From the IMG/VR virus record IMGVR_UViG_3300046665_000548, positions 372,001 to 436,000 of that record: 64,000 nt of DNA; one strand, 5' to 3'. The translations under genes and the position numbers were made by a program. Positions 2,430 through 63,604 of this stretch are shown piece after piece. A model generated the notes under the pieces. It saw nothing but the letters and a program-made list of their open reading frames with translations. It did not search any database and had not been told where the DNA came from. Numbering within the stretch: the first letter of the stretch is position 1; the number at the start of each line of letters is the position of its first letter.

Positions 2430-5255
2430 TTACTCGCCACCAGACTGCGCTGTTCGCACTCCAGCGTCTCTGACTTCTTTTTTGAGACCAATGATAGCCG
2501 CCATCTGACCGTCGAATTGACTACGTGCGTCGCTGCGGCGGTTTTCCATCGATTGTGCTAATGATCCAATATTCTGGGCAAGCACACTCCTCGTGGCATT
2601 GATTTCGTCTGCTACTCCGTCGATCCGGCTTCCAACGTCGCCAACAGCTTGAGTCACTGGAGTAGCAGCACTGACGCGTTCCACCGCTCCGGCTACTTGC
2701 TGCCCAATGTCGCCGCCAATAGCGTTCGTGCGGCTTTCCTGCTGTGTTGCCGAGGTGTTACGTTCAACCGCGCCGCCTAGATAACGAAGTACGTTGCTGA
2801 CGCTCTCCATTTCTCTCGTGAGAGCGGGATCAACGGGCGCTCCGCCGCCCGCGTCACGTCTCTTTGTGAGATTAACAAGCTCTTTTTGCAGGATGAACAC
2901 CTGTTCTTCGGTCGATAATCCTCGAAGCACTCCGCCCATCACTGTATTCAACGCAGCAAGTTGATTACCCAACATTTGGTTCGAACCAACGATGGCAGAT
3001 GCCCCGGTATCACGGGGCAATCCGGCCTCATATGATTCTACCTGTCTAATTGTTCGTTGCTGTTGTGCTCGGCCCATTGCCTCATTGGTTGCTTGCTGTG
3101 CAGCATCGGCTCGCTTGTTGGCAATATCCAATGCATCGTTCACGTTTCTCAGAGCGTTTTTCTGCGCGTCGATGGCGTTTTGATTGCGGAGATTTTCACT
3201 CACACTTTCGAGACGAACGATGTCCTGTTGAATACTCTGGCGCTGACTGGCGAGACTAGCCGCCTGTTTGTCGGCCAAAATCTTTTCCAGATAAGCGTTT
3301 TCGGCTGCTCTCTCTTGCTTGAGTGCTTCGATTCTGCCTTGAAGTTCGTTGATCTTGCTCTGGTTGCCTGCTCCCTGCGCTCGGGACAATTCGCCTTCAA
3401 GCATGTTCATTTGCTGGCGAATTTGATCTAGCTTTGCGCGATGTGGGCCTTCGTCTTCATTGAGCCCGCTTCTTGCCACAAGCGTCATTGCACCAATGCC
3501 AGCCGCGATAGCCGCAAGTGCTGGTGCTCCTAAGATTCCGACAAGACTGCTGAGCGCGGATGCAAGTATCCCGAAGACGCCCGAACCTCCGCCGATCAGT
3601 CCAAGTGCTCCGAAGGCTAGCTTTAGTCCCATAAGGCCGCCGACAACGGCTAGAATGGTCCCGCCGTGTGACTCCAGCTTGTCCGCAAGCCATCCGATAC
3701 CATTGGCGGCTTTTGTTATTCCCTTGAGTAAAGATTCGGTCGCTGTAGCAACGTCCTGTGCAAAGTTTCCGGAGAATGTTGCGCCGAAAAGTTTGAAAAT
3801 AGACGAAGCCGCTCCACTGAGAGCCTGCTCAAGTTTCTGAAGACCGCCGCTACCTCTGAAGCTCTCGAAGCCTTTCATGACTGCGGTCATACCGCTTTCC
3901 ATCATGCCGTACATCTTCAGACGAATATCACCGGTCGCCCTGAGCCAAAGGTCTTCGAAACTTGCCGCCGCCGCAGTGAGCTTGGCCCGCGAATCTGCCA
4001 TCAGCGCGATATTCCTGGCATCTTCCTGCTGCTTGGCCGTGATCACCCTCTCCATTGCGGGTCCCATAGAGGCCAATTGTTGCCCAGTAGAATCCATTAG
4101 TCGCAACGCGGGTGCAAGCTGGGACATGGTATTGCCGAGAAGAACTCGATAATCCGCGAGGGCTTTTTTGTTCGATTCCGTGGGTGACTTCATGGCTTGT
4201 TCCATCAAATCGCGAAGATGGAAAACCATGTCAGTCATACCGTGATCCATCATGTCCTTGGCCGGACCCGATTGGATCATGCCCGGATTGTCCATGTGCC
4301 CGGCTACCTGAGTAGTCAACTTGGTGAGGAATTGTCCTGCCTCTCCTCCCAGGGCCGCAAACTGTGGAGTAACGTAGTTCATCATTTCATCGAACTTACG
4401 TTTCATATCGTCCGATAGAGTTTCCCTATACGAAACAACTCCAGCATCTCGCTGAGAAGCAGCCGTTTGCTTTAGAATCTCTTCACGGCTAGTGCCAAAC
4501 GCTTGTGACAGGATTGATGCGTTAGTGGCCAGCTTAGAAATCTGCTCAGCCGCCGCTACGCGGCTCGTCATTTCGAGTCGGCCCTGCACCCGCATGGTTT
4601 CAGTATAGTCACCGATATAGTCATTGATTTGCGAGACGGTCATGCCGAGCATATTGAAATCTTGCAAATTTCTTCGTACGCCCGTGGCAAGACCGAGGAA
4701 ACCGCTAGGACCTCCAAGTTGCGACATTGCGGCCGAATTTTTCTGAGTAACGCGTACCAGTTCTCCCATGGTAACGCCGCCAGCCGCTGCTGCTTTGCCC
4801 ATGTCCTGCATGCCGCCAACGAAACCTTGACCGGCGTCGTTCATCTTTCGATAGTTGTCCAGCATCGACGTGCCGTAATCAACTAATTGGCCAACGATAG
4901 AACCGAGGAACGATCCCTTAGCGAGACCCTTTAAGGCGTTAAGAGCGCCGTCTGATCCTTCGCCAAGCAGCTTCAACTTTCCAGAAACGGTATCAACGCT
5001 TCGGTTGAAACCCGAACGGGCGTCATCCAACATACTGTTGACAGTACGACGTTGCTGATTTGCCGCCATGTCTTGTTTGTCGTTGTATTCCTTCAGCCCC
5101 TTCATGAAGCTGTCGAAGCTGCCGCCGCCTAGGCCACCTCCGCCGCCTCCATTAGCGATAGAGCGCGCGACGCCGCCCCATATCTGGTTGCCGCGCTGCA
5201 TTTCGGCTAGGAGCCGAGACCATTGATGTTCCGAAGGTGTGTTGTCGTCAGACAT
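2430..5255 (-). CDS. Tail tape measure-like protein
   Basis: 941 aa, Ala/Gly/Gln-rich and helical, with a hydrophobic central segment and coiled coil; lies divergent to the gp26-like chaperone gene. Confidence 0.75.
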   Translation of the reverse strand: MSDDNTPSEHQWSRLLAEMQRGNQIWGGVARSIANGGGGGGLGGGSFDSFMKGLKEYNDKQDMAANQQRRTVNSMLDDARSGFNRSVDTVSGKLKLLGEGSDGALNALKGLAKGSFLGSIVGQLVDYGTSMLDNYRKMNDAGQGFVGGMQDMGKAAAAGGVTMGELVRVTQKNSAAMSQLGGPSGFLGLATGVRRNLQDFNMLGMTVSQINDYIGDYTETMRVQGRLEMTSRVAAAEQISKLATNASILSQAFGTSREEILKQTAASQRDAGVVSYRETLSDDMKRKFDEMMNYVTPQFAALGGEAGQFLTKLTTQVAGHMDNPGMIQSGPAKDMMDHGMTDMVFHLRDLMEQAMKSPTESNKKALADYRVLLGNTMSQLAPALRLMDSTGQQLASMGPAMERVITAKQQEDARNIALMADSRAKLTAAAASFEDLWLRATGDIRLKMYGMMESGMTAVMKGFESFRGSGGLQKLEQALSGAASSIFKLFGATFSGNFAQDVATATESLLKGITKAANGIGWLADKLESHGGTILAVVGGLMGLKLAFGALGLIGGGSGVFGILASALSSLVGILGAPALAAIAAGIGAMTLVARSGLNEDEGPHRAKLDQIRQQMNMLEGELSRAQGAGNQSKINELQGRIEALKQERAAENAYLEKILADKQAASLASQRQSIQQDIVRLESVSENLRNQNAIDAQKNALRNVNDALDIANKRADAAQQATNEAMGRAQQQRTIRQVESYEAGLPRDTGASAIVGSNQMLGNQLAALNTVMGGVLRGLSTEEQVFILQKELVNLTKRRDAGGGAPVDPALTREMESVSNVLRYLGGAVERNTSATQQESRTNAIGGDIGQQVAGAVERVSAATPVTQAVGDVGSRIDGVADEINATRSVLAQNIGSLAQSMENRRSDARSQFDGQMAAIIGLKKEVRDAGVRTAQSGGE

Positions 5256-10649: not shown

Positions 10650-11264
10650 CTAGTCGGCCCCATTAGTCGAAACAGTGTCGGGAGCGCTCTCGTCCGGGTG
10701 TAGGTTGACCCATTCTTGTGGGTTATTCTGTCCTTCTTGGCGTAGGTAAACGTAAGTGGTTTCCTCCCAAGAGAGAACTTTATGTGTCAGGTTATCGAGA
10801 ATAAAGTCCCCGCGATCCGTCTTGATCATAAGAACGGCATGGCCCCGCTGCTCGCTGTCGAGGACGACTGTGATCCTCATAGCCCGGCGAGGAATACCCA
10901 AGTCAGCGAGCAGACTACGCTTTAGAAGCTGATGATCTTCGCAGTCGCCGTATCCGTCCTCGGCCAAGTCCCAACGATCTTCCACACCCCAATGAAGCGG
11001 GTCTGTTATCGAGGTTGTGGTGTCGTTGACGTTCGAGTTGATGACCGCGATTGCCGACCATATCTCCTCAGTCAGGACGATGCGCTTGGGCTCGTCCTGA
11101 CCGAATGTGCATTCTTTTTTGTACTTGTCGGCCTTGCAGAATTCAACCCACGCGTCTAGCGGAATACCCGCACCATTCGCGATGATCGGTCGATGCTTGG
11201 TTGGTAGAGCCAAGCATTGTGTTGTGAAAAGACACGCAAAAAATAAAGTAAGAACGTATTTCAC
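10650..11264 (-). CDS. Transglutaminase-like cysteine proteinase (BTLCP/LapG-like), secreted
   Basis: Signal peptide; GDCEDHQLLKR, GHAVL and ILDNL carry the Cys-His-Asp triad pattern. Confidence 0.88.
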   Translation of the reverse strand: MKYVLTLFFACLFTTQCLALPTKHRPIIANGAGIPLDAWVEFCKADKYKKECTFGQDEPKRIVLTEEIWSAIAVINSNVNDTTTSITDPLHWGVEDRWDLAEDGYGDCEDHQLLKRSLLADLGIPRRAMRITVVLDSEQRGHAVLMIKTDRGDFILDNLTHKVLSWEETTYVYLRQEGQNNPQEWVNLHPDESAPDTVSTNGAD

Positions 11265-11285: not shown

Positions 11286-11365
11286 CACGGACCAAACTCA
11301 GGGTTGCCGATTGAGGCCGTAAACCATCTGGCTATTTACTGATTAGCAATGGGTGAAAGTATTGA

Positions 11366-11575
11366 TTAAGCGCGCGCAATGCTCTCGATATTTTCCGAGA
11401 AACGCAGCTTAAGCTTAAGAGCTTCGTTCATGCAGGTGGAGATAATCTGCCTGCCAACCAGGGTAGAGCCGGGAAGACTCTTGAGTTCTTCGTCAAGAAG
11501 TTCTTTGACGGCTCCGGCTTCGTAATCCGGATCGGCGTCGTAGTTGAGTTCCACAATCCAATAGGTCTTAGCCAT
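11366..11575 (-). CDS. Small motif-family protein (MAKTYWIVEL...EALKLKLRFS)
   Basis: GGAGA SD before ATG 11575; C-terminal A-x2-LKLRF. Confidence 0.6.
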   Translation of the reverse strand: MAKTYWIVELNYDADPDYEAGAVKELLDEELKSLPGSTLVGRQIISTCMNEALKLKLRFSENIESIARA

Positions 11576-11663
11576 TTTATCTCTCCGCAATGAGTTGGTA
11601 GTAAACAATAAGCCGAACGTAACGTCTGAATTTCTAACAGTCAAAAGGTCTTTTTGGTCAACT

Positions 11664-12215
11664 TCATACGTCGGATTCCAACCCATAAAAAATGAAATGG
11701 TAACGACGGTTTAGAGTTCGACGCCTCTGATTGGCGTCGATCCCATTATCCCAATCCGTGAGTGCGGATAGAAGCTTTCCTTCACGGCCAAGGAGACGAT
11801 CTGCGATCTCCGTGACGTGTAGGTTAGGAACGGCCTCTGGACGCTGCTCCAAGAGGCTCTTAAGGGCTTCCTGTTCACGTCCTGGCCCGAGATGCTGAGC
11901 CCACAATGCGAGCCCTATAGCGCCTGAGCGCCCGACACCAGCCTGACAATGGACAAGGATATTCGTTTTGTCCCTTCCGAAGTCGAGGGCTCGTTGAACT
12001 TGATCTTCGGTAGCCTGTTTGAAGACTGGCCAATCCGTATAGGGCGACGGCGCTGGCCTGTCGAGGTCAACGAACGGGAGAACAAGATGCTGCGGATGAG
12101 GCTTCTTAGTGAACCGTAGACGATTTTTCGCGTCCGGGTCTTCAAGCGAGATGACTGCTTCGAAGTCTCGCTTGTGGCGCTTTGCCCAACCAAATGCTGA
12201 AACTGTGATTTGCAT
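11664..12215 (-). CDS. Protein-tyrosine / dual-specificity phosphatase
   Basis: CX5R active-site motif VHCQAGVGRS; FVDLD acid loop. Confidence 0.85.
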   Translation of the reverse strand: MQITVSAFGWAKRHKRDFEAVISLEDPDAKNRLRFTKKPHPQHLVLPFVDLDRPAPSPYTDWPVFKQATEDQVQRALDFGRDKTNILVHCQAGVGRSGAIGLALWAQHLGPGREQEALKSLLEQRPEAVPNLHVTEIADRLLGREGKLLSALTDWDNGIDANQRRRTLNRRYHFIFYGLESDV

Positions 12216-12217
12216 CT

Positions 12218-13012
12218 TCAGCTTCTCTGCTTGGCAATCCGTTTGGCCATCCGCTTTTCCAGGCCGTCGTCTTTTGGTTTGGCCGAACGAGGTTGATCCT
12301 CGACTAGCTCGTGCTCGGCCTCAGTTGTTGAGGTCTTCTTGTATTTGTCCTTGTTGGCCTTTGTCGGGGGCTTTTTCTTAGGAGCTTTCGTCGGGCGCTC
12401 TTCTGGTTCTGGGAACGCCATAACCGGGAGTTCAAAGTTGTACCAAGCTGAGATCGCCGCGACCGTCTTGGTGTGATACTCGGCGCTCGTGCTCCATGAG
12501 GCAGCGCCATCCGAGTAGAATTTGTCGAGCACATCCGCGTAAGCCGGATCATCAAGCTTCCATCGCCGTAGGAAAAAGAAGTAACGGATCGTACCAAGCA
12601 CGAACCATCCGGCCGATGTATCGCCCGGCTCAATGTCCATCATAGCTTCGAGAGCGGGCTCCAGGGATACTTCGTCGGGCGTTCCCATATGCGCGAGGAC
12701 GGTCTTCCTGATAGCATCCAAGTTACGGAAACCATCCAGTAGGTTTCCCATTGGGTCATCGGGCAGTTCTTGTGCCATGAAGGCGTGAGCCCAGCCTTGA
12801 GTGTATCCGCAACCCGGCACCGGGCAGCGCCAACCGTCGTTGCCAGCTACAAGCAGACCGGTATCGTGCTCGTTGTGCTCTTCAGCGTATCTCTTGTGAG
12901 CTTCGTCGCTACGGTCGTTTCCGCACGTGAAAGGATGAAACGTGCCTTTGCGCTGAAATGCATTCAGATTCTTGACTTGATCATCCGACCAAGGTGTTTC
13001 AATTTTTTCCAA
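12218..13012 (-). CDS. Hypothetical protein with N-terminal zinc-binding domain and Lys-rich tail
   Basis: HPFTCG...WRCPVPGCGYTQGWAH motif. Confidence 0.55.
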   Translation of the reverse strand: MEKIETPWSDDQVKNLNAFQRKGTFHPFTCGNDRSDEAHKRYAEEHNEHDTGLLVAGNDGWRCPVPGCGYTQGWAHAFMAQELPDDPMGNLLDGFRNLDAIRKTVLAHMGTPDEVSLEPALEAMMDIEPGDTSAGWFVLGTIRYFFFLRRWKLDDPAYADVLDKFYSDGAASWSTSAEYHTKTVAAISAWYNFELPVMAFPEPEERPTKAPKKKPPTKANKDKYKKTSTTEAEHELVEDQPRSAKPKDDGLEKRMAKRIAKQRS

Positions 13013-13019
13013 ATTATCC

Positions 13020-13238
13020 TCACACGAAAACGATTTTGAATTCTACAGCTAAACGATGATCGGCAAAGAAGAAAGAAGTATATCCAAGCCGTCCTCCGTG
13101 CATGTCAATACTCCAATCTTTATCGTTCACCAGCTTTCGATCATTGAGCCATGCTAGTGCGGCGTACGTAGGAGCAAGGTAAATGTCGGTGTCAACAACG
13201 CGAACCTCGTTAGTGAGATTCCGAAGCTTCCGTGTCAT
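13020..13238 (-). CDS. Small motif-family protein
   Basis: Ends FFFADHRLAVEFKIVFV. Confidence 0.6.
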   Translation of the reverse strand: MTRKLRNLTNEVRVVDTDIYLAPTYAALAWLNDRKLVNDKDWSIDMHGGRLGYTSFFFADHRLAVEFKIVFV

Positions 13239-13459
13239 TTCATCCGCTCCAGGAGTTGATGAGCATACACGCCGGGCACCTCTTGATCACTCCACTGGCC
13301 CTGGGTGGCGTCGGCCCATGCCAATATAATTACCCAGTAGCGGATTCGATATGGAATACGCCGTACGCAAGCAATAAGCACATTTGAAAAGACTCGTCGG
13401 GATTTTCCGCTGATCCGATCAAAAGAACTGATAATTTTATTTTGAAGATAATCTGTCAT
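13235..13459 (-). CDS. Hypothetical protein
   Basis: 74-aa ORF with ATGA overlap to the next gene. Confidence 0.5.
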   Translation of the reverse strand: MTDYLQNKIISSFDRISGKSRRVFSNVLIACVRRIPYRIRYWVIILAWADATQGQWSDQEVPGVYAHQLLERMK

Positions 13460-13472
13460 TTTTCAACATGGG

Positions 13473-13620
13473 TGCGATTGACATTGGCTACCGAGTCCGT
13501 CCCGTTCGGCCTACTTGCAGTCCAACCCCGGCTCAGTACCGGGTGACTCGTTCGGCATCCCCACGCGTGACCGCGTGTTGGATTTCTACTTGCGTTCTAC
13601 CCGCTGGACGAACAATCGCA
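13473..13620 (-). ncRNA. Candidate structured non-coding RNA with pseudoknot (strand inferred from neighbouring genes)
   Basis: 8-bp closing stem TGCGATTG/CAATCGCA, two internal hairpins and two crossing 5-6 bp helices in a ~215-nt gap with no credible minus-strand ORF. Confidence 0.45.
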
Positions 13621-13675
13621 ATTACTCCTGTGCCTACTCCAGGCCCATGGTTCGCCCACTATACCATCAGCATCG

Positions 13676-13987
13676 TTATTCGCCATCATCTTTTGCGCCG
13701 TCCCAATTCAGTTTGAACCAAATTGCATGCTTTTCGTCACGAAAGAACAAAGTAGGTAGACCAGTACCTCTCAGCATCCATCGCGCGTAATCGGCATCCT
13801 TGCGTAATTCATAGAGAATTGAATTGTCTGACGCGTAGGTGAACCTTTCAACCAAGCTCACCCAAGTGGTTTCTTTATCGATCCATTCGGATGCATTGAT
13901 ATAGAGGGGGAAGCCAAAGTCAAACCGGAACGGAAAATTTTCCAGGATGTACTGACTTACTTCGCTCCCTGTTTTATACAACAGCAT
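13676..13987 (-). CDS. Small motif-family protein
   Basis: LFFRDEKHAIWFKLNWD near the C-terminus; start overlaps the end of the SbcC gene. Confidence 0.65.
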   Translation of the reverse strand: MLLYKTGSEVSQYILENFPFRFDFGFPLYINASEWIDKETTWVSLVERFTYASDNSILYELRKDADYARWMLRGTGLPTLFFRDEKHAIWFKLNWDGAKDDGE

Positions 13988-16040
13988 CGTCCTCGAACTT
14001 GGTGAACGAGTCTTCTTTGTGGACCATCAGAATACGGGACACACGGCTTCTCAAGTTGTCTTTATGACTAATCAGGAACACGTTCTTTCCGCGATCTCGC
14101 GCCAATCCCTTCAGAATCTCAAGGGCCGCTTCTGCGCCCTGATCGTCCAACCCATTATCGATCAATTCGTCTACCCAAAGCAAGTTGACCGAATTATTCA
14201 GACTTTCCCAAACATCGCGGAACGACAGTGAGGTGGCCATGATGACGCGGTTCATCTCGCCGCGCGATAGCTGCTCGAAATCGAAATCGCGTCCGAGCAG
14301 TGTGATTTCTACTGACAGGTCAGATACGAAGCGAACTTCGTGCGGCAGTCCGAGCTTATCCAAATACTGGTTCAGGCGAGAATTCAAGTAGGCGAGATTT
14401 TGATCGATGATCCGCTTGCGAATAAACGAGTCTTTGGACGTGAGCAGCTTGAGCAGGAAGTCTTGATGCTTCATCAGGACGGTGAGATCATTGAGAGGAG
14501 CCATGTCGATCTTCTGGAGAGTTTCCTTTAGACTATCGATCTGCTGCGTGTACGGGTTCACCTTCTCGTTCTCTTTTTCAAGATCGCGAACAAGCATCTC
14601 GTACAACTGTTTGGCCTTGTAGACCTCATCACGACTTTTAAAGGTAGTGACTGGTCGTGCGCCAAGAGCCTTGATCGCATCCTTCGCGGCTTTCCACCTA
14701 CTATCTTGTTCAGTTACGTCGGCTTGCACCTCGGTGCACCGAACCTGTTGCTCTTCTGCACGCGCAATCAGTTCAGTAACGCGTTGTTCAGAGTCGCTAC
14801 GGACTTTGTTCATCTCGACCTTGAGGACGTTTTCGATCTCGTTGGTCAAACTATCGAGGCTTGCAAGTTCACGGGTGATCTTGGCTTCTAGAGTTTCCTT
14901 CTGCTTCTCCAGGTTCGCCTGTACCGTCTTCAGGTGATCTGTTCCTGAAAGGCCCTGGCCGCAGGTCCTGCACGAGTGCTCATCGGAGTGCTCAATCTCA
15001 TGCATTATTACGGTGAGTTCTTCTGTCAAGCGCGCGGCCTGAGAAGAATGACGTTCGGCGTCTTTCTCTTTCCGAGAAATCTCTGTCCTTAGTCGTGCAA
15101 TCTGCACCTCAGGATCAAGAGCGGTTGCTTCTTTGCGATAGCGATCAGCCTGCGAACAAACGCTATCAACCTCACGCTGAAGACGCGCGGCCTCACGCGA
15201 CTCCGCATCCTCGACTACTCGAAGCTCGCGCAGCTTAGTATCGAACGCATCCAACGCATCGAATGCTACAATCTCAGCCTCAAAGTTTATGTCCTGGACG
15301 GCCTGTATTTCCGCTTCGAGTTCAGCAACGGCATGAACATGATGCTTCAGCCAGTTCGAAGAATTCGTCTCGGCTTGCTTGATGGTAACCTCGATGCGGC
15401 TGTTCGCTTCGGTGGTTGCCTTCAGGTCCGCTTCGAGATCGCGAATCTGATCTTTGGTTCCATCAGGACCGTTCATGATCCTCTTCAATTCGTCGGCACG
15501 CTGAGAGATTTGGGTAACACCAAGAAGCTCTTCGATTACTGCTCGCTGTTCGCTTACAGTCATCTTCAGGAAAGGTTCGGTGAAAGTATTGAGTGCCAAC
15601 ACATGCTTGAACATAGTGTGGCTCATACCGATCAGACGCTCGATCTCTTCTTGCGTGTGGCGGTTCTCGCCCTGCGCCTGATCATCGCTGCTCGTTTCAG
15701 TATTGTTCACGTAGAAGCGCATCGTTACAGGCTTCTGTCCGCGCTCAATCCTATAGGATTTACCATCACGCTCGAACTCAATGGTTACGAGCATGGCCTT
15801 GTTGTTGATGTTGTTGACGAGATTTGGAATCTTGATCTTCGTCAGCGGCTTCCCGTATAGGGCATAGCTGATCGCTTGAAGAATAGATGTCTTGCCAGCG
15901 CCATTACGCGTGACTCCTCCGGTGCCATCGGTGTTCTCACCAAGGACGAGGGTCAATCCAGCACTATCAAGATTGATCGCTTGGGTAACGTTGCCAACAG
16001 ATAGGAAGTTCTTGAGTGTAAGCTTTGTAATACGGATCAT
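13974..16040 (-). CDS. SbcC/Rad50-like recombination ATPase (T4 gp46-like)
   Basis: KNFLSVGN, Walker A NGAGKTS, zinc hook CRTC, LSRGE signature, Walker B LWVDE, ISH loop. Confidence 0.93.
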   Translation of the reverse strand: MIRITKLTLKNFLSVGNVTQAINLDSAGLTLVLGENTDGTGGVTRNGAGKTSILQAISYALYGKPLTKIKIPNLVNNINNKAMLVTIEFERDGKSYRIERGQKPVTMRFYVNNTETSSDDQAQGENRHTQEEIERLIGMSHTMFKHVLALNTFTEPFLKMTVSEQRAVIEELLGVTQISQRADELKRIMNGPDGTKDQIRDLEADLKATTEANSRIEVTIKQAETNSSNWLKHHVHAVAELEAEIQAVQDINFEAEIVAFDALDAFDTKLRELRVVEDAESREAARLQREVDSVCSQADRYRKEATALDPEVQIARLRTEISRKEKDAERHSSQAARLTEELTVIMHEIEHSDEHSCRTCGQGLSGTDHLKTVQANLEKQKETLEAKITRELASLDSLTNEIENVLKVEMNKVRSDSEQRVTELIARAEEQQVRCTEVQADVTEQDSRWKAAKDAIKALGARPVTTFKSRDEVYKAKQLYEMLVRDLEKENEKVNPYTQQIDSLKETLQKIDMAPLNDLTVLMKHQDFLLKLLTSKDSFIRKRIIDQNLAYLNSRLNQYLDKLGLPHEVRFVSDLSVEITLLGRDFDFEQLSRGEMNRVIMATSLSFRDVWESLNNSVNLLWVDELIDNGLDDQGAEAALEILKGLARDRGKNVFLISHKDNLRSRVSRILMVHKEDSFTKFEDDAVV

Positions 16041-16095
16041 GATCAACTCTAAATATAAGCTGATCATAGGCCACGGGTCGGAAGGTTAGCAATAA

Positions 16096-16443
16096 ATGCG
16101 ATTTACAGAGGTGTTTGATAATTTCACTGATGGCGACGTTGAGCAACGTCGTACCTCTGGTCGTGGCGCATCTCTTAAAGATAAGGGATACCCGCTGAGC
16201 CGTTGTACTATTTTTCGTGCAATGCTTCCCGGCCAACCGCTACGGCAGATGGACTACGTGACACGATCAGAGAAGTTCGCTCGCGAGCATGCCGATCATA
16301 TGGCGGCAGTTGAAGGCGAAACCTACATCGTGAACCGCTACCGTGCCAGTACGGAGCATGTCTTTGAAGCATTCAATCCCGGAGAGTATTTCTACGACGG
16401 TCCGGCCATTGAAGGGCAGACCATCTATAAAGCAGACTACTGA
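16096..16443 (+). CDS. Small protein resembling ART-fold/polyvalent-protein domains; possibly head-packaged
   Basis: TIFRAM..MDYVTRSEKFAREHA..FNPGEYFY pattern; N-terminus MRFTEVF. Confidence 0.45.
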   Translation: MRFTEVFDNFTDGDVEQRRTSGRGASLKDKGYPLSRCTIFRAMLPGQPLRQMDYVTRSEKFAREHADHMAAVEGETYIVNRYRASTEHVFEAFNPGEYFYDGPAIEGQTIYKADY

Positions 16444-16513: not shown

Positions 16514-17023
16514 TCAATCTGCTTTCTTGCGGCCTCGGCCGGTGGTTTTCTTGGCGGTCTTCTTCGCCGCGCCCTGGCGCTTCTGTCCGAGGCCCATCTG
16601 CTTGGCGAGGTCCGACCGAGCCTTCGCGTAGTTCGGAGCTACCATGGGATAGTTCGGCGGGAGACCCCATTTGGCGCGATACTGCTCTGGGGTCAGATCG
16701 CGGCCGGACAGATGTCGCTTCAGCGACTTGTAGGGCTTACCATCTTCGAGCGAGATCAGGTAGTCGGCAGTAATAGATTTCTTGATCGATACAGGGGGCT
16801 CGCCGCGCTGCGGAGAAGCACTCTGCTGCATTTCACGACTGCCACTGCCGCCGCCAGATGAGACGGTAAGCAGAGCGGTGTGAACCGTGTTGATGAGACT
16901 GGCCACGTCGTCCGGACGAACGTTGTTGTGAGTGTTGGCCAGATACGCTGACACGATGTCGCTCGTCATATTGAGGAGACTTGTGTCGTTTCCGGGCTGC
17001 CCGGTCGATTTGTTGCCTTCCAT
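16514..17023 (-). CDS. mucR: Ros/MucR family transcriptional regulator (prokaryotic zinc-finger fold)
   Basis: TSDIVSAY, PPVSIKKSITADYLISLEDGKPYKSLKRHL, LTPEQYRAKWGLPPNYPMVAPNYAKARSDLAKQMGLG. Confidence 0.93.
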   Translation of the reverse strand: MEGNKSTGQPGNDTSLLNMTSDIVSAYLANTHNNVRPDDVASLINTVHTALLTVSSGGGSGSREMQQSASPQRGEPPVSIKKSITADYLISLEDGKPYKSLKRHLSGRDLTPEQYRAKWGLPPNYPMVAPNYAKARSDLAKQMGLGQKRQGAAKKTAKKTTGRGRKKAD

Positions 17024-17121: not shown

Positions 17122-18144
17122 TTAGCTATTCAGACCTTTGTAGATGTGAACAAGCGTCTCTGGTTGCATACCAATACTCTGTACTGAAAGCAAACCGTCT
17201 ATCACGATTTGGTCTACAGATTGGAACACAACATCCCCGATAAACTCTTGATCCGCCTCACTTTTTGCCGCGTGGATCAGTTCTACTTTGCGCAACCCAT
17301 ATTGTGCCGCGAATGTATCTTTAACGACTTGAGCTTCCTCGTAAGAGATGTCCTTGTCGATGGTTACTCGGGCGGTAAGTTTTGGACGTAGCAATCTACC
17401 AGGATCGTCAAGCATCTCCGAAAGCTTCATGCTTCTAAACAGAGGCTGATCTGGCCAAGAGGCGAATTCGGGGTCTTTACCCCACTCCAAAAACATAGCG
17501 CCGCGCTCGCTGTCCCAGTTGTCTGAAAAGTCGAACGGCATAACATTTCCAAGATAACAGATGTTACCTTTGGTCTGTCTCTTATGGAAATGCCCAGTAA
17601 ACACGAACTCCTGCTTTGGGAAGGAGTCCGCCTGCACCGCGTGTGGCGAATCCGGCATTTCAACCATCGCGTTCATAAGAAATCCAGGCACCTCAAGATG
17701 AGCAATGACGTACCTGCTGTCCAAGTTCTTCAGTTTCTTGTGTTCGTCACCAATTAACCAAGGCAGGAACGTCACGCCTCCGATAGTCTCGGGGTTGCGT
17801 AGAATTTTGATGTTCGGCAAATAGCGAACGAACTCGATGCTGCTCACATCGCGCTTATCGCGATAGAACAGGTCGTGGTTGCCCGGAATCCAGTAGGTGC
17901 GCTCGAACGCATCATTGATCATCTGGATGCCCTCTAGAGAGGCAGCCATGGTTGAAATATGCAAAGCATGACGGTTGTCGTGCCAATCACCGGCAAAGAG
18001 ACAGGTCTCGCAGCCGCGCGTCTTTGCCTCTTCGATGAACCATCGAAGATAATCCATACTGTCCTGAATCGCGATTGGGTTGTTACCTGAGCGTCCGAAA
18101 TGAATGTCGGTGAAGACCGCAGCCTTCTTAAATAAATTTGTCAA
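17122..18144 (-). CDS. SbcD/Mre11-like nuclease (T4 gp47-like)
   Basis: Metallophosphoesterase motifs TDIHFG, AGDWHD, PGNHD, GHFH. Start (TTG 18144) is uncertain. Confidence 0.92.
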   Translation of the reverse strand: MTNLFKKAAVFTDIHFGRSGNNPIAIQDSMDYLRWFIEEAKTRGCETCLFAGDWHDNRHALHISTMAASLEGIQMINDAFERTYWIPGNHDLFYRDKRDVSSIEFVRYLPNIKILRNPETIGGVTFLPWLIGDEHKKLKNLDSRYVIAHLEVPGFLMNAMVEMPDSPHAVQADSFPKQEFVFTGHFHKRQTKGNICYLGNVMPFDFSDNWDSERGAMFLEWGKDPEFASWPDQPLFRSMKLSEMLDDPGRLLRPKLTARVTIDKDISYEEAQVVKDTFAAQYGLRKVELIHAAKSEADQEFIGDVVFQSVDQIVIDGLLSVQSIGMQPETLVHIYKGLNS

Positions 18145-18754
18145 TTTTGCTGTCCACAAAGACGAATATGTCGTCATGCATATCGCCATCTTCTTTAGAT
18201 GGTTCAGTATTGTCTATTGGAAATTGCTGGATAAGCTCTTTTAGTCTTTCCGGATGGTTCTCAGTAATTTCGATGCTATTGGCTTCGATATACTTTGCCG
18301 GAATATTCGGATCGTTGAGAAGAGCCCCATCCTTCATAAGCTTGGCTGCTCTCTCGATAATAGCTTCATCTACGTTGGCGGCCTGGAGTACCGAAACCAC
18401 ACGATTTGCTACTTCTTTGTCGGCGTCTAACTTGCCGCGTATTTTATCGAACCATCCCTTTAGATGCTGCGGAGCCATAAACCGGAATGACTGCCAAACG
18501 TGGCCTGAATCGTGATTGATGAATCGACCTAGGACCCAGTAACGCTTCGACATACGATCCAGATACGCATATCCGAGGTCGCGAGCAGTGGACACGCTTG
18601 GCTTGGAGTGCGACTTGAACTCTAACTCAATGCCCTCATCGGTATGCGAATCAGCCGCTTCGCGATGCGCATTCCAGTGCGTTCCGAAGATGCGCGCCAT
18701 ATCTTCTTCGCGCTTGTCGTCTTGTACGATCCGAGTGTTTCCGTGACGAGCCAT
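18128..18754 (-). CDS. Hypothetical protein
   Basis: 208-aa ORF overlapping the SbcD start. Confidence 0.55.
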   Translation of the reverse strand: MARHGNTRIVQDDKREEDMARIFGTHWNAHREAADSHTDEGIELEFKSHSKPSVSTARDLGYAYLDRMSKRYWVLGRFINHDSGHVWQSFRFMAPQHLKGWFDKIRGKLDADKEVANRVVSVLQAANVDEAIIERAAKLMKDGALLNDPNIPAKYIEANSIEITENHPERLKELIQQFPIDNTEPSKEDGDMHDDIFVFVDSKIDKFI

Positions 18755-49286: not shown

Positions 49287-52200
49287 TTAATCGACCACCT
49301 CTGACCAGAAACCGCCCTCTTCCTTGATCATGAAGGGAGATCGTTCGTAGGCGGACGGAACTGCATGGCGCACTACGGAACCGGCCAAGTGAACGGTGGC
49401 AGGTGCAGATTGTGCCAGCAGGATTTTCGATCCAGCTTCGGGAGCTTCATTCAGGGTAATCAAGAGGTCAGAACCGTTCCGCGAGGCGGAGAAGTGTAGA
49501 CCAAAGTTGAGAGCAGTCGTAGTTCCAGATACATCTACTACTGATACCTCAATGTTGCCATTGATGTCAGCATTTTGTAGCGGATATTCTGTGGTTGTGC
49601 CGTTGGAAGAGTAAACAGAAAGGTTTCGCTGCTCTTCGCCAACACGAGTTGCTAGGGTACCACGGCGCAAGTCTGTCAGCGTCGCAGTATTGTTGTTTTG
49701 GTCGATGTTGTAATACTCGATGCGCTCGCCGTTGATCCAGATTACGCCGGGAGAACCGTCATAAGGCTGAGGCAACGCCTGAGGAGGCATCAGGAAGTTC
49801 GATACCTTGTAGGGGTTCAAATGGACGGTGATCGTGTCCGAATCATCGGTCAGATCGTCCACGAGGGTGCCCGTGCGCTGGTAAGACAACTCGATCACAT
49901 CCCAAGTTCCGTTCATCTTATAAACGCTGCGCATGCCAAACTCGGTCTTTTCGACGGCAGGAACCGTCGATTCGAGCCTGAAGGTGTCGATAGGCGCAAC
50001 GTCCCAGTCTGCCGAGAACGCAAGGTCGCCCATGAGGCCAAGGCCAGACTGCTTCGTCATGGCAACCCATTCGTTAGGCAGGCGAGCCGGATTACCGGTA
50101 AAGGCCATAACAACGATCTTGTCCGAGGCGATCTGGGTGCCTGGGATGTAGACCAGGGTTCCGCCAGAATCCGTGAACATGAACGAGTCATGATCGTACG
50201 AATCCCAACCGCCTGAATCGAAATCGTAGTTCGACAGAATACGGTCATCAATTGGGCTAGCAGAGAATTCTAATCCTGGTGTCAAGAACTTGCCGTTCTT
50301 AGTAACCAGCAGATAGTCGATGCTTGGTACCTTGAATGGGATAAAGTATTCGCTGATGCCAGAACCACGGAAGCTATGGGTCTGGATGCCCATCAGGGCA
50401 GGATTTTCGAAGGTTGTCGAAACAATACGGGTGTTGTCATCTGGTGGGATGACGATATCATACTGATAGGTGTCCCAACCGCTCTGTTTCACATCGTAAT
50501 CTGACTTGGCATACTGCTTCGTAACTGTGAGTACGCCGCCGCTTACGACATAATCGTGATCTTCGAAGATACACACGACTACGCGATTGCTATTGACGGA
50601 CGGACTTGTCTGGACGAGCTTGTCCTGAACAATAACAATTGGAGCAAGATTGTTATTCTGTAGAGCATCGGCAACAGACGTACCGCGAGCGATAGCACCC
50701 GTGTACAATTGGTCATCAATCCAAATCTGAAGGTTGCTGAGATCAGCGACTGGTTTAATGAGCAATTGGCGATGGTTGTTTTCGAAATCGAAACGTCCAT
50801 ATCGGGTAAATGGCGGAGTTAAGCGCACGCCGTTTCCTTCAACAATCGTTCCGATGTGCTCCAATGAGGCTCCTGCTCCGAGAAGAAGTGTACGGTTGGC
50901 GAGGTTCCAGGATTGACCGACGTTGTATGCCAATTCTTCCTGATGAGTACGGGTCATCACAGTAACTTCATTGTCTGACGGCGGACCGTAGACGTTGATG
51001 GTGACCTGCTGACCGACATCCGGAACGGAATCGAGAACGATCTGTGGTCCATTGATGGTGTAGGCATCATCGTCCATAACCACGCCATCGAGAAGAACCT
51101 CGACCGGGCCGACAGGAGCGTCGAAGAGTTCGAACGACGAACCGCCTACACAGTCGAAATAACGCTGTTCGACAATCGCAGAGGTGCCAGCGGACCCAAT
51201 GATGTGAGCCGTGATGACCTTCGGACGAGGAGCGCTCATCTGAACTGTGATTGTGCGAGCAAAGTGGTCGATGGTGTAATCATCGGTCATCTTAAGACGG
51301 ATGCCGTCGCGATAGACAAACACCGACTCTAGGCTCTGGGCTACGTTCTGGTAGCTCAGTTCGATGGTTGCCGAACGGATGTGGGCCGTGCGAACGTACG
51401 CGGTATACTGGTTCGGAGCGCCCTTTACCCACTCAGACTTGACGCGGATCGCTACGTGATCGTTTCCATGTACTGGGACGAACTCTTCCGGGTGCTTGCG
51501 GTCATGGTACGGATCGACCAAGCCGAAGGCCGTGCGGTGGATCGCATACGGGTTATACTGAGTTTCCTCAGCAAGACCGCCGCTGATATCCACATCGCGA
51601 TCAGTGATGATCTCGGTCTCAAGCGGCAGAGTGTCGTACGGTCTGATATCCCAGTCGCGAAGATCGGGTAGATGCGGAACGTAAAGTTCTCCGCCCTCAA
51701 CATCCAAGCCCTTGAAGTTCGTATTGAACAGCGTTTCGACATCCTTCTCGCGCATACCCAGGCGAGGCTCATAGAAAGCGAGCATTCGCGATAGAGCGGA
51801 CGGAGTTTGGAAGCCGCTTACGTTCCAGAGCGTATCGAACGGAATAACGTCCATCGGTGGGTAATCCCAGCCGTAGCCCTGTTCAAGTGGTGTTAGACCC
51901 GGATCAATTCGGTCGAACAGCAGCGAAATGTTAAGGCGACGAACAGGATTGTAGTTCGAATCAGCAGGATCGAAGCTAGCATTGAGATAGTTGTCGTACC
52001 AATTTTTCCACGGCTGCTGATTTTGAAGAACCAGTGCGTCAGCGGCGTTAGAAATCTGAAGCGTGCGATATTCCTGCGTGTCTGGATCGAAGTACAGAGG
52101 CTTGTCAAAATCGGTCACGTGCACCGCTGCAACATCGATATCAGGCGTCAAGATGCGTGAGAAATCACGCGTCTTCAAATGATACGGCTTGACCTCTTCG

Positions 52201-55200
52201 ATGTACGAAAGCAGATTTCCAGTAGGATCGTAGGTCTGAATTGGAGGCTGACCCAGACGCTCGTTGAAATCTCGAACGACGAGGAAGCTGGTCTTGAACG
52301 CCCAATCAACCTGATCCTGCACACTGTGTAGGAAATGGATCATCGAGAAGAACAGTTCATTGATCTCAGCATTCGTCAGAATGAATTGACGAAGAGCATG
52401 AATGATCTGACGCAGTTCCCAGCTTCCATCTCGGTTCACGACATCGGGGAGGTTGATAAATGTCGAACGAGCGAATGGGACACGAGCCGTGTTATTGAAC
52501 TCGTCCGAAAGCCTGATTGTGCCCTTTTCCCGCGCGACTACGACCCAATGATCGCCATCAAAAGCAGTCCACGCCCATCCAGCGCCATCGTTGGCAATGC
52601 GGACGAACACGTTTCTCGGATCGGTGCCTTCGGTGTTATTGCGATCTACCATGGTCGGGTAGGACACAACTGGCGGCTTCGAAGCCGAGTATCCGGTTGC
52701 ATACCAATCGGTGATCGTCCAGAAATCCTGAACGTTGTACGTCTGGGTGTTCTGAATAACGAGGCCCTGAACATCAGAAAGATTGCTAGATGGGCGATAG
52801 AACCATGTAGTCCAGAAGCCACCGGCTGTGGAGTCGTTCTCAATTAGAATTCGGGTACCTTCGGCTGGCGGCTCGAATGTCAAAAGAGTAGCGAGAGCAG
52901 TGCGATCTGCGACCTTGATGTCGAAGTTCGACGCAATTCTCAATAGTTTGTCCGGGTTGAAGCGCTCACCCGGATCAGAGATGGACTGATCAATCTCCCA
53001 AATGCTCCACGTCTTCAACGGCCCGTTGTAGTTTCGCAGAAGCACGCGAGGGCTACGCTTACTGTAATTGAAACGAAGAGTAGTATCGAAATCGAATGCT
53101 ACAGTATCCCAGGTATATCTGTCCCATGGACGGAAGCCGTTGACATAATCTCCATAGAGTTCGAAGAAGTATTCGTGCAGCCCTTCGACCGAATCCGTAG
53201 CAAAGTCATAGCTATTGACGGGCGGCGGCTCGATCAGATCACTTCCCTGCGGCATCGACCAAACCAGCTTCTCGAAAGTCGGCGTCTTGGCCTTCAGGTA
53301 CGACACCGCGCTTGGTCGGTCGAACATGATGTTCGAACGTCCGAGTAGGATGTTCACCATGCCTGTGAACGAAAGGCGGCCTGCGCCGATAGCTCGGGCA
53401 ACCGAGATGTCGAACATGCTCTGGACCGGGCGCATTTCCAATCCAACTCGGTGGCGGGCCGGAACACTTTGATCAGGCGTGCGAACGCGGAACTCGTTGA
53501 AGCCAACAAGACTATCCTGAAGTTTTTTCCAGATAGGAGCAGGCGGAACGGCAGTCTTGTCAGCACGAAGCATGAGTTGCCATTCGTTATGAATGACACC
53601 ATCGTAATCGTCTTTTGCTACCTCGAACTGGAATACCGTTGTCGCATCATTGAGATACTGTTCCAGACCACCCATCAACAGACCGCTGACGGTGATCGGA
53701 GATACCCAAGGAATGTTTTGGCCAATCGGGTCGGTTAGAAGCTGCGAGACCTGACGGGCACTGATCTTGCGGCCAGTAACACCGACTGGCGTTGTAGCGA
53801 CATTGCGCTGCCAGAAATAGTACGCAGTAACCATCTGGTTCGTACGGTTGTCGTACTCCAGCTTCTCCACGTACTGGGCTCCTGGAGCCATGTCTGGGTT
53901 GTCTTCGGCCGGGGCCTCTGTGGTTCGGGTCCACTCATAGATGTCAACCGACGTGTTTGGAGCAAGTTTTGTCCAGTTAGCGACGCGGTAATCAATTTCT
54001 ACCTTGTTGCGAACGATGTCGGTGGAATCCGTGATATCTGTCTGGCATTCGAGATAACGAACTGCCGAGAGGTCCCACCAGAGCATACCAACTTCATTCG
54101 ATCCCCACTGATCGTTCAGACCAATGCTGTAGCGAGCCGGATCATATTCAAGCTTGAAGGTAAGTTCCTTTTCCGCTGCACCAGATATCAAACCAGCAGT
54201 AGGATCAAGTATAGTGATCTTGTCCATCTGCATTGGTTCGGCGGTAAGCGCCATATCGGTTTGCTTCGTAATCAGATCGAAGATCAACGCCGACGACATG
54301 CGGTGAGTTTCAATCTTCCTCGGTTCAGCACGATATACTGCCCAGATATTGCCGTTAAACTTATACGCACCCCAACGCTTCTGTAGTCCGGAGTTGTTCG
54401 GAGTAGCATCGTCCACGTAGACGATCTGGTTAAGCATCGGCGTGAAGCGCGTGAAGAACTGCGTCATCTGGCTAACGGTTGTGAAACGCAGAGAACGGAA
54501 GATAGCCAAAGTCGGCACGGTAACCGAGCCTGGGCTTTCCTCGTAGCTGATACCCTTCTTGCCAGTGCCGTTGATGATGATGCTCGCGGCCGAATCGATC
54601 TCGGCAAGTTCGCAAAATCCTTCAAAGTTAGGCGTCGTGTGGGTATCGCCGCTGATGAGAATGTTCAGACCGAGATCGGCATCCGTGAGATTATGCGGCT
54701 CGGTGAATGTCACACGGAACGTATTCAGCAGAACTGCATCTTCTCGAACGGTATCGATAAAGCGCACTGCGTTGTTCGAAGAGCCGATGGTATAACCCTG
54801 GAGAACGTCCCACGACTTGTCACCACGTCGTTCATACATCCACAGGCGAGAACCGGTGGTGATATCCTTGTTGCCCATGTATAGGGCCGTGAGGTCGGAC
54901 GGACGGAATACGCTGTAATCAACCTCGTCGCGACGAACGTAACCGGCTGTCGGGAGGAATTTCTCAGCGGCCATCGTTGCCGCAGAAACCTTCGGCGTAC
55001 CGTAGGTCGGGAATACCTGCCTTGTGTTAGGAGCCATCTCGACCCAACGAGTGTCAGCCGATCCAAAACCGATAATTCCGTCGTTGCTGTGGGACGAGCC
55101 GAAATCTACATATTGAGGATTGTTGCGGATGTCTGCCGTGATGAGACGGAAGCTAACAAGCGTCTTCTTGTCAATTGCACCATAGCGCCCGACATGCAGA

Positions 55201-63200: not shown

Positions 63201-63604
63201 TTACCAAGAGCATCGTAAACGTCATCGTCTGTTTGGATCGCCTGAACCTTCAGGAGACCGCGAGCAGCTTGATTACGGCGAGGATTGTAGGAGAGAAAGC
63301 GGGCAAGGCGCAAAATGCTCTCGCGAGCCTCTGCCTTCTCAAGAAAGTTTTCACGGGCATTGATGTCGGTCTTGAACGCAAGAATGCCGGAAAGCCACGC
63401 AAGCAGATCGATAATCGCGATGAACTCGGAAGATTCGATCCAGTCGTTGAAATCTTCAGGATAGTTGACGCGGATGTACTCGCGAAGCGCAGCAGAGATC
63501 GTCTGAGGATCGGAAGAGTTGAAATTGATTTGCGTGAAAGCGCGGTATAGAACCTGCCAGTCTTGGGCAGCGAACAACTCGCTCTGGCGTTGAACGGAAG
63601 ACAT
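60299..63604 (-). CDS. Baseplate wedge protein (T4 gp6-like)
   Basis: NYPEDFNDWIESSE, NARENFL..ARESILRLARFLSYNP, FGDGRFGEAP, QNRMVSGEDY. Confidence 0.9.
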   Translation of the reverse strand: MSSVQRQSELFAAQDWQVLYRAFTQINFNSSDPQTISAALREYIRVNYPEDFNDWIESSEFIAIIDLLAWLSGILAFKTDINARENFLEKAEARESILRLARFLSYNPRRNQAARGLLKVQAIQTDDDVYDALGNNLQNRILNWNNPDDPDWFERIVLVLNSVFVSTNPFGVPLKNGTLAGVKTQQYRINSRFADLDLSYAAKVGGDTMDFEVINTDFDETLGITERTPNTEAALHMLYRTDGNGNASADTGFFMGFRQGILKRAQYNILNPIENQTIDIDVANINDTDVWVQSLDDNGDVTAQWEKVPLMLNENITFNSIPADIRKVFSVTTRDEDQITLRFGDGRFGEAPVGRLRAWYRSSNGQQYQIRPFEMSQIRIDVPYFNRRGVQRTLTITLGLESPVSNSAPAETEEQIRLRAPQVYSTQNRMVSGEDYNAFPLQSNLATKIKAVNRVYSGHSRFIDLNDPTGNYQDTNVFSDDGMFYKEPQTTFVEIPLSDNVSADAILGTYIQPSVKSSDAFNYVHDFLIQDTRRGAIPVPGGMTWYRVSDGRFSSTGWFNANSDLLLPGAMLFITPPGGGDGQWVTVSDRTGTPSSPPGEGSPGPIMLSQGIESGWIVTRILPRYASTLSNTITQAILAKLVNRLSFTLWYDYNSPDGMNHWTLRDPANLDDLPNRSDTAIKIMSADYVSNALWRFRTKGLRYVFESIENVRFYFDGQKAVESLLRQQDEDYIRVLKVNPDPNTGQPLNQDYDLTVDRMIYYADGFGDPNRIVIRFSDKDADGYPDVPNTYYNIVNPDDAKNSYLFWYRKPDLLWAPYYSMVVYESDQDRQVDDLVATGTVAFQINGARPFSFWLKTDTGWTFQQRAFRYGVGHGPNVGAKWIKQGGTVGPVPIGARMYFQWKHFAPSDRRIDPAKTNIIDIFVLTSEYDFLTRDWIANGALARSLPTAPTELDLRMSFANFENFKMFSDEIIWRPVRYKYLFGTGADAMLRAKFKVVRLANSSMSDGEIKSRVIKAIDEFFKAERWDFGETFYFTELAAYVHQQLAISISSFVLVPESDTGVFGDGFEVQSRSDELFISTAQVTDITIIQSNTPTNLRMA

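Follow-up and report, generated by a model that had tools for sequence, protein, structure and literature searches.

A 64,000-nt stretch of the IMG/VR virus record IMGVR_UViG_3300046665_000548 (hereafter the window) has a 216-nt gap between genes at positions 13460-13675, and this gap very probably holds a selected, structured RNA element. The record is a 607,744-bp virus genome, rated complete, and the window corresponds to its bases 372001-436000. The conserved RNA, 187 nt long and delimited by alignments and the covariance model (CM) R1, occupies 13465..13651 on the minus strand, between the genes encoding a 103-aa and a 74-aa protein (g103 and g74). It represents a new structured-RNA family, so far present in five distinct related giant-phage contigs. 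On balance we lean towards its being a discrete protein-binding RNA. A preliminary description made from the window sequence had proposed a novel structured non-coding RNA at this place; nucleotide conservation, compensatory base changes and a fifth homologue found with a CM bear this proposal out, and no match was found in Rfam 15 or among tRNAs and transfer-messenger RNAs (tmRNAs).

Conservation and Distribution of the Element

The element is found in the window and in four other distinct metagenomic phage contigs, always in the same place, between g103 and g74 and downstream of a SbcC-like gene. Three syntenic contigs (L083, L084 and L085) were reached when the two small genes flanking the gap served as queries in word-based protein searches, and an exhaustive profile search with the g103/g72 family led to the fifth genome, the 220-kb contig L094. 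A CM built on the first four sequences gave L094 a score of 190.7 bits, exactly at the syntenic place; scores of the element under CM R1 are 190-230 bits. The contig L096, which is the L083 phage from a sister sample, carries an RNA identical to that of L083 with the same score (over 2810-3016) and is not counted as distinct. The homologous RNA elements, defined by alignments and CM and 203-264 nt long, are the following:

L084:2745-2959, homologous RNA element
L085:183-445, homologous RNA element
L083:6345-6547, homologous RNA element
L094:4358-4621, homologous RNA element

The gap aligns among these relatives in long invariant blocks, while the flanking proteins are just 46-64% identical. 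Conservation was quantified in an alignment of window positions 11300-16100 with L083, L084 and L094, as per-site identity of the window to these three. Without its variable tip, the element reaches 0.805, the short spacers flanking it 0.40-0.50, and third codon positions 0.41-0.55 in six of the seven neighbouring genes and 0.70 in g106; the RNA element is as conserved as the best proteins of the neighbourhood. Its conservation lacks 3-base periodicity (0.74-0.92 in all phases, versus 0.86/0.91/0.54 in the SbcC-like gene), and 1-base insertions and deletions (indels) occur inside conserved blocks. Every genome has an open antisense strand, but the frame differs, and peptide segments of one genome's open reading frame (ORF) need two frames in another. 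High identity, the missing periodicity, indels within blocks and antisense frame switching together indicate a non-coding element whose nucleotide sequence is under strong selection.

Coding capacity within the window agrees with the preliminary description, which saw no credible gene in the gap: the longest minus-strand ORF has 30 aa, plus-strand ORFs of 82 and 91 aa receive negative codon-usage coding scores, and a stop codon stands two codons upstream of the g74 AUG, in the g74 frame.

Public gene callers annotated antisense ORFs over the RNA, of 158 aa in L083 (6284-6760, minus strand) and 224 aa in L096 (2552-3226, minus strand). Both are spurious, and the one in L096 also covers g103 and part of g74. 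The antisense strand of the RNA reads open because the RNA lacks stop-codon complements. The true 74-aa gene was left uncalled in L083, L096 and L094; its homologues lie at L083:6563-6784 and L094:4616-4840.

Outside these contigs the searches were negative. BLAST searches of 50,697 phage records with the region, for both near and distant matches, came up empty, and neither BLAST nor CM found a second copy in the 608-kb genome. An IMG/VR scan seeded with SbcC returned 80 loci, none with the element or the small neighbour genes; scans seeded with g103 and g183 returned no loci, and one seeded with g264 returned a single distant locus that lacks the RNA. Exact-pattern scans with three conserved blocks gave 0 and 0 matches in viral contigs (IMG/VR), 0 and one chance match (L091) in JGI metagenome contigs, and 0 and one chance match (L093) in prokaryote genome contigs (one genome each for ~186,000 species). 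Neither L091 nor L093 was accepted as a homologue; the latter lies inside a membrane-protein gene of a Prevotellaceae metagenome-assembled genome and agrees only in a 23-nt seed plus hairpin. Absence from the scanned collections is weak evidence, because the scans need exact matches and two true JGI homologues lie outside the scanned collection.

Secondary Structure of the RNA

The fold was derived from RNAalifold and manual analysis of the alignments. It comprises the following parts, listed from the 5′ end of the RNA:

13644..13650, minus strand, P1 5′ strand CCAUGGG, pairs with 13466-13472; 97% paired, one compensatory change of G-C to A-U
13627..13643, minus strand, P1a hairpin CCUG/CAGG with the 9-nt loop GAGUAGGCA; invariant but for one loop base
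13613..13620, minus strand, P2 5′ strand UGCGAUUG; 92.5% paired, compensatory changes at two pairs
13593..13610, minus strand, P3 hairpin CGUCC/GAACG (5 bp) with the 8-nt loop AGCGGGUA; 92% paired, one compensatory change
13584..13592, minus strand, invariant P3-P4 junction CAAGUAGAA, from the alignment
13557..13583, minus strand, P4, AUCC/GGAU closing a tip of variable length, from the alignment
13509..13556, minus strand, module M, a bent hairpin, from seven aligned module copies
within module M, minus strand, base GCC/GGC (GGY across copies), then internal loop GAACG / GCAAGUA, from the seven copies
13545-48 / 13519-22, minus strand, P5a AGUC/GACU, 4 bp; 96% paired
13539-43 / 13527-31, minus strand, P5 CCCGG/CCGGG with loop UACUGAG, separated from P5a by a small internal loop
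13497..13509, minus strand, P6, a tentative, weak 3-bp hairpin CCG/CGG with a 7-nt loop; 86.7% paired, one compensatory change
13481..13496, minus strand, 16-nt 3′ tail ACUCGGUAGCCAAUGU, invariant but for its third base; GGUAGCCAAUGU identical in five of five sequences
13473..13480, minus strand, P2 3′ strand CAAUCGCA, contiguous with the P1 3′ strand
13466..13472, minus strand, P1 3′ strand CCCAUGU, from the alignment

As judged from the five aligned sequences, this fold is nested (P1, P1a, P2, P3, P4, module M and P6) and not pseudoknotted. Standard pairs fill 93% of its cells, and seven pairs are changed on both sides. None of 500 shuffles reached either 93% or seven such pairs; sliding the partners by 1-3 columns left at most 42% of cells paired and at most two pairs of this kind. 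P1 (7 bp; GCGUGGG/CCCACGC in relatives) and P2 (8 bp) are stacked outer helices that close the molecule through one continuous 3′ strand, with P1a placed between their 5′ strands.

The interior of the molecule is modular. The P4 tip, which in the window reads CACGCG-GUCA-CGCGUG (13562-13577), has a different sequence and length in each relative but always allows a hairpin, and in L083 the helix extends to 8 bp. Module M follows P4, and the P4-M unit is present in two tandem copies in L085 and L094 and in one copy in the others, giving seven copies of M for comparison. In all seven, the outer pair of P5a is A-U or G-C, and the third is U-A, C-G, G-C or U.G. The internal loop sets GCC-GAA-CG opposite GCA-AGUA-GGY in seven of seven copies, with AGUA/GAA invariant, and is flanked by C-G (U.G in one copy) on one side and by G-C or G.U on the other. 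It matches the AGUA/GAA signature of the loop-E/sarcin-ricin S-turn, whose three-dimensional geometry is here a prediction. The tetranucleotide GUAG is repeated as well: 5, 5, 7 and 5 copies per RNA, where shuffles have 0.9-2.2 (P<=0.0045); additional copies come with the extra units and inserts. In addition, the P3 loop CGGGU could make a tertiary contact with ACNCG of the tail, a fit seen by eye in three of the first four sequences.

The tandem P4-M units lie at L085:251-399 and L094:4428-4573. Those of L085 have diverged; those of L094 have nearly identical P4 tips (CGCACCCGGAAUGUGAG), which suggests a recent duplication of the unit.

Two pairings offered by RNAalifold may not hold and were set aside. 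The first, GGAUGCCG/CGGUAGCC, meets an extra U between GGAU and GCCG in L085; the second, GGGU/AUCC, faces the lengthening of the AUCC/GGAU helix to 8 bp in L083.

The preliminary description had drawn a closing stem, two hairpins and two crossing helices. In the letters of the window all of these are present: the closing stem TGCGATTG (13473-80) with CAATCGCA (13613-20), the hairpins CCCGG..CCGGG (13527-43) and CACGCG..CGCGTG (13562-77), the pairs CGAGTC/GACTCG and TCCAA/TTGGA, and the direct repeats CGTTCGGC and CTACTTGC, each occurring twice. Comparison with the four homologues supports P2 (the closing stem), P5 (the CCCGG hairpin) and the variable P4 tip (the CACGCG hairpin). The crossing helices 13492-97/13545-50 and 13521-25/13578-82 fared differently, with standard pairs in only 66.7% and 77.8% of cells. 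The first competes with P5a (95-96% paired, two covarying pairs) and the second with the AUCC/GGAU helix of P4; since they are poorly kept and overlap these better-supported helices, the fold is not the pseudoknot first proposed. The extent also had to be redrawn: the closing stem is real, but the element gains the outer helix P1 (13644-50 / 13466-72) and the hairpin 13627-43, so that it spans 13465-13651 and ends 5 nt, rather than 13 nt, before the ATG at 13459.

Judged from the window sequence by itself, these motifs are not clearly above chance. The folding energy of the gap lies within 1 SD of dinucleotide shuffles (z of -0.57 on the minus and -0.70 on the plus strand), an outcome that the preliminary description had listed as counting against its proposal; for the exact RNA element, z is -1.38. 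Of the dinucleotide shuffles, 16% contain an 8-bp perfect inverted repeat, 21% at least two short hairpins and 5% both; gaps of at least 200 nt make up ~15% of the gaps in the genome by a crude gene call. It is the collection of homologues and the covariation check, both recommended by that description, that brought out the compensatory changes in five sequences.

Comparison with Known RNA Families

The Infernal/Rfam scan agreed with the preliminary description, which had failed to match the element to known classes. No gathering-score match to Rfam 15 (4227 models) was found in the 64-kb window, and 300-700-nt searches of all five homologues at E<=10 returned nothing but noise of 11-16 bits. 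The set includes riboswitches, ribozymes, 5S, 6S, Y RNA, signal recognition particle (SRP) RNA, RNase P, tmRNA and the sbcC/sbcD motifs; the self-cleaving ribozymes (hammerhead, twister, pistol, hatchet, HDV-like, glmS) likewise had no Rfam match. ARAGORN called no tRNA or tmRNA in the window; there is no T-arm beside the P2 3′ strand, and only P3 resembles a D-arm. The conserved strings had no match in the searchable literature, a comparison outside which a catalogue of 10,006 candidate phage RNAs (PMC10690425) falls.

Several known systems nevertheless share features with the element. Sponge small RNAs (sRNAs) of the CsrB/RsmZ type also repeat a short motif, as the phage RNA does with its over-represented GUAG (5-7 per RNA), and also vary in the number of hairpin units, here one or two P4-M units; the phage RNA moreover appears to be a discrete, small transcript with its own promoter-like box. 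However, its motif is not the GGA of CsrA-binding RNAs, its large invariant closed core (P1/P2/P3/tail) is absent in sponge RNAs, and no Rfam match links the two.

Module M, with AGUA/GAA flanked by Watson-Crick pairs, resembles 5S rRNA loop E and sarcin-ricin hairpins. Short strings of the phage RNA (AUGCCGAAC, AGUAGG, GGUAG) also resemble the E. coli 5S rRNA sequence, a likeness that serves as a lead only. In contrast to 5S rRNA, the phage RNA is 187-264 nt long with at least five helices, and it has no Rfam 5S match at E<=10.

Structured mRNA leaders (riboswitches, T-box and ribosomal-protein leaders) are likewise found directly upstream of a start codon and form multi-helix junctions closed by a P1, and the conservation of the phage RNA exceeds that of the coding sequence downstream. 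It differs from them in having no family match, no tie to the g74 family outside the clade and no switching structure that we could find. Finally, end-paired stable RNAs (6S RNA, Y RNA/YrlA, 4.5S RNA) share the terminal stem joining both ends and the length of ~190-260 nt, and the D-arm-like P3 hairpin presumably recalls the tRNA-like part of bacterial Y RNAs, which is again a lead only; the phage RNA has no Rfam match to 6S, YrlA or SRP and lacks a T-arm.

Flanking Signals and Functional Strand

The spacer upstream of P1 contains a candidate promoter, defined in the upstream alignment:

13658..13663, minus strand, -10-like box TATAGT, preceded by TGG

In five of five genomes the consensus GGTATA(A/G)(G/T/A) precedes the first base of P1 by 6-7 nt, reading TGGTATAGT in the window and GGTATAAG or GGTATAAA in relatives. 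Its conservation inside an otherwise poorly conserved spacer (0.50 identical) suggests a -10 element, with transcription starting at P1. The stop codon of g103 falls between the -35 and -10 positions of this candidate promoter. A GGTATA-type box is not recurrent in the genome; a look-alike at G000:363971 was dismissed, as it lies beside plus-strand genes.

Downstream, U4-U7 directly follows the P1 3′ strand in four of five genomes, the window having UUGAAAA instead. The sole candidate of the terminator scan is the plus-strand hairpin at 13562-77, which is on the wrong strand and not conserved. The g74 AUG is located 6-17 nt after P1 in all five genomes, behind an A/U-rich spacer with no clear Shine-Dalgarno sequence. 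On the minus strand, G.U pairs outnumber C.A mismatches; this, together with the orientation of the TATA box and U-run along with the genes, suggests that it is the minus strand that functions.

Possible Function and Alternative Explanations

We hypothesize that the gap contains a gene whose product is a conserved folded RNA, with the minus strand read from window position 13651 to 13465. The RNA would be transcribed from its own sigma-70-like promoter, whose conserved TATA box lies 6-7 nt upstream, and its 3′ end, whether made directly or by trimming, would lie at the P1 stem and the U-run behind it. The RNA would bind a protein, either as the scaffold of an RNA-protein particle or as a decoy (sponge), with the P4-M units and the 5-7 GUAG motifs as the putative binding sites. 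As a full explanation, this protein-binding RNA appears to us slightly better than an even prospect. It is favoured because the P4-M copy number varies, the AGUA/GAA loop of M is invariant and GUAG is repeated; S-turns of the loop-E/sarcin-ricin type are classic protein-binding platforms. The RNA may also serve as the 5′ leader of g74, given that the g74 start codon is only 6-17 nt after P1, and a dual role, in which a leader releases a stable RNA, is possible.

A number of observations weigh against this picture. The five homologues represent about three or four lineages, which keeps the covariation counts low, and shared ancestry accounts for part of them. Covariation is neutral on the pairing of P1a, because P1a never varies; one P3 position is mismatched in two of the five sequences, and P6 is broken in L085 and L094. 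The stability of the fold is unexceptional, with z of -1.80 and +0.79 for homologues and -1.38 for the window element. The promoter scan made no call for the -10-like box, whose usual final T is absent in four of five genomes, and the U-run is preceded by a long-range stem closing a 170-250-nt ‘loop’ instead of a classical terminator hairpin, the window's own U-run being poor. As for a protein partner, AlphaFold models of the g74 and g103 families (pLDDT 61 and 43) are too poor for use. Lastly, a leader acting in cis would explain the tight spacing of the g74 AUG just as well.

The strongest competitor, though a doubtful one and in our estimate about half as likely as the protein-binding RNA, is that the element forms a cis-regulatory 5′ leader of a g74-g72-g264 operon, operated as a riboswitch or by a protein. 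Expression would be controlled by P1/P2 close to the start codon, or by P1 and the U-run acting as a terminator. The constant position of the AUG behind an A/U-rich spacer, the G+C-rich P1 with U4-U7 directly after it in four of five genomes, and a size and multi-helix junction like those of large aptamers all fit such a leader. Yet the association with g74 is not consistent: homologues of g74 in L086-L090 overlap the upstream gene, leaving no gap and no CM match, and since these distant homologues lack the element, it is hardly an obligatory leader of the g74 family. Moreover, no alternative antiterminator or anti-sequestor pairing was found, Rfam 15 offers no riboswitch family match, an internally duplicated unit (one or two copies) would be unusual in an aptamer, and the downstream genes have no recognisable metabolic function.

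Returning to the protein-binding RNA, its most specific version is, in our view, distinctly unlikely to hold as a whole. According to it, the element would be a new modular RNA class limited to a giant-phage clade, probably infecting alphaproteobacteria, whose S-turn units mimic a protein-binding site of rRNA (loop-E/sarcin-ricin-like); the RNA would then be a decoy that captures a protein of the host or the phage, such as a ribosomal protein, a translation factor or a defence toxin aimed at rRNA.

We regard as very improbable that the element acts at the DNA level, as a replication or packaging signal, as hairpins of single-stranded DNA or as an array of protein sites (the GCAAGTAG and GCCGAACG repeats). 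Short direct repeats are indeed conserved, and neighbouring genes encode DNA-processing SbcC/SbcD-like proteins and a Ros/MucR regulator. However, the repeats are few and irregularly spaced, compensatory changes keep pairing within one strand, several minus-strand G.U pairs would be C.A mismatches on the other strand, and a hairpin tip of variable length is typical of RNA.

Even less credible is the relic of a small mobile element (MITE-like) lodged between g103 and g74, with P1/P2 as its terminal inverted repeats. Inverted repeats of 7+8 bp do close the element, and distant relatives have g74 without it, but it is single-copy in the 608-kb genome and exact-pattern scans found no other matches in viral, metagenome or prokaryote collections. 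It occupies an identical site in five genomes that show ~45% identity at neutral sites and yet is ~80% conserved inside, implying selection on its own sequence.

Least probable of all is that the gap encodes protein (the plus-strand 82/91-aa ORFs or a small minus-strand ORF) or is a neutral spacer with chance hairpins: antisense frames are open over the element in all genomes, with such ORFs annotated in L083 and L096, and single-sequence fold statistics are at chance level, but the open frame changes between genomes through 1-nt indels, coding scores are negative, conservation has no 3-periodicity, the g74 frame has stops shortly before its AUG, and the identity of 0.805 against 0.4-0.5 in adjacent spacers excludes a neutral spacer.

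Genomic Setting

The genes around the RNA are as follows:

17122-18189, minus strand, SbcD-like gene
16514-17023, minus strand, Ros/MucR regulator
13974-16067, minus strand, SbcC-like gene
13676-13987, minus strand, g103 (103 aa), the gene upstream of the RNA, a paralogue of g72
13235-13459, minus strand, g74 (74 aa), the gene downstream of the RNA, encoding a small helical phage protein
13020-13238, minus strand, g72
12218-13012, minus strand, g264
11664-12215, minus strand, g183, dual-specificity-phosphatase-like

Identity of g74 by codon position is 0.72/0.83/0.47, the pattern typical of a real gene. Domain searches with g74, g103 and g72 found no known domains, and in the ESM Atlas g264 and g74 yielded nothing beyond ‘hypothetical phage protein’. 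The products of g103 and g72, which flank the pair formed by the RNA and g74, share the C-terminal motif W..L..D.D...G...FFF.D...A..FK. Their family is small, with ~10 representative clusters in an exhaustive search, and in one member (P0013, 377 aa) the domain is repeated seven times in tandem. No other protein of the block comes near the conservation of g183, which is 82-91% identical among relatives that share 45-65% identity in their other proteins; some enzymes of the dual-specificity-phosphatase family act on RNA 5′ ends.

Elsewhere in the window, 10650-11264 (minus strand) encodes a bacterial transglutaminase-like cysteine protease (Peptidase_C93, E 5e-53) that is kept in L083, L084, L094 and L096. 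At 49287-60299 and 60299-63604 the minus strand holds two very long ORFs, of 3670 and 1101 aa, arranged head to tail.

The RNA genes of the whole genome comprise 57 tRNA genes (ARAGORN) and a permuted tmRNA. Outside the window, an adjacent pair of tRNA genes with the anticodon CUA (amber suppressors) is located at G000:C1:4091-4256. The genome appears to use the standard code, and the rarest of its stops is TAG, which ends 22 of 171 long ORFs. A further ARAGORN call is an odd tRNA with a 4-base anticodon at 1944-2020 of G000:C1. The permuted tmRNA gene, in two pieces, lies at G000:C1:576377-576796 and carries the tag ANDNVAVSEYALAA; this tmRNA and the Ros/MucR regulator suggest an alphaproteobacterial host.

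Implications

Giant phages carry large sets of RNA genes and, to our knowledge, nearly all of those recognised so far are tRNAs and tmRNAs. The element described here adds a well-defined modular RNA fold with no relative in Rfam or, by exact-pattern scan, in the genomes of ~186,000 prokaryotic species. It also carries a practical warning for annotation: gene callers place spurious antisense ORFs over the RNA and miss the real 74-aa gene alongside it. If the element is a protein-binding RNA, it would reveal a new RNA-protein interaction during infection by a 600-kb phage; if it mimics an rRNA site, the phage would be equipped with an RNA decoy in addition to its 57 tRNAs and a tmRNA.

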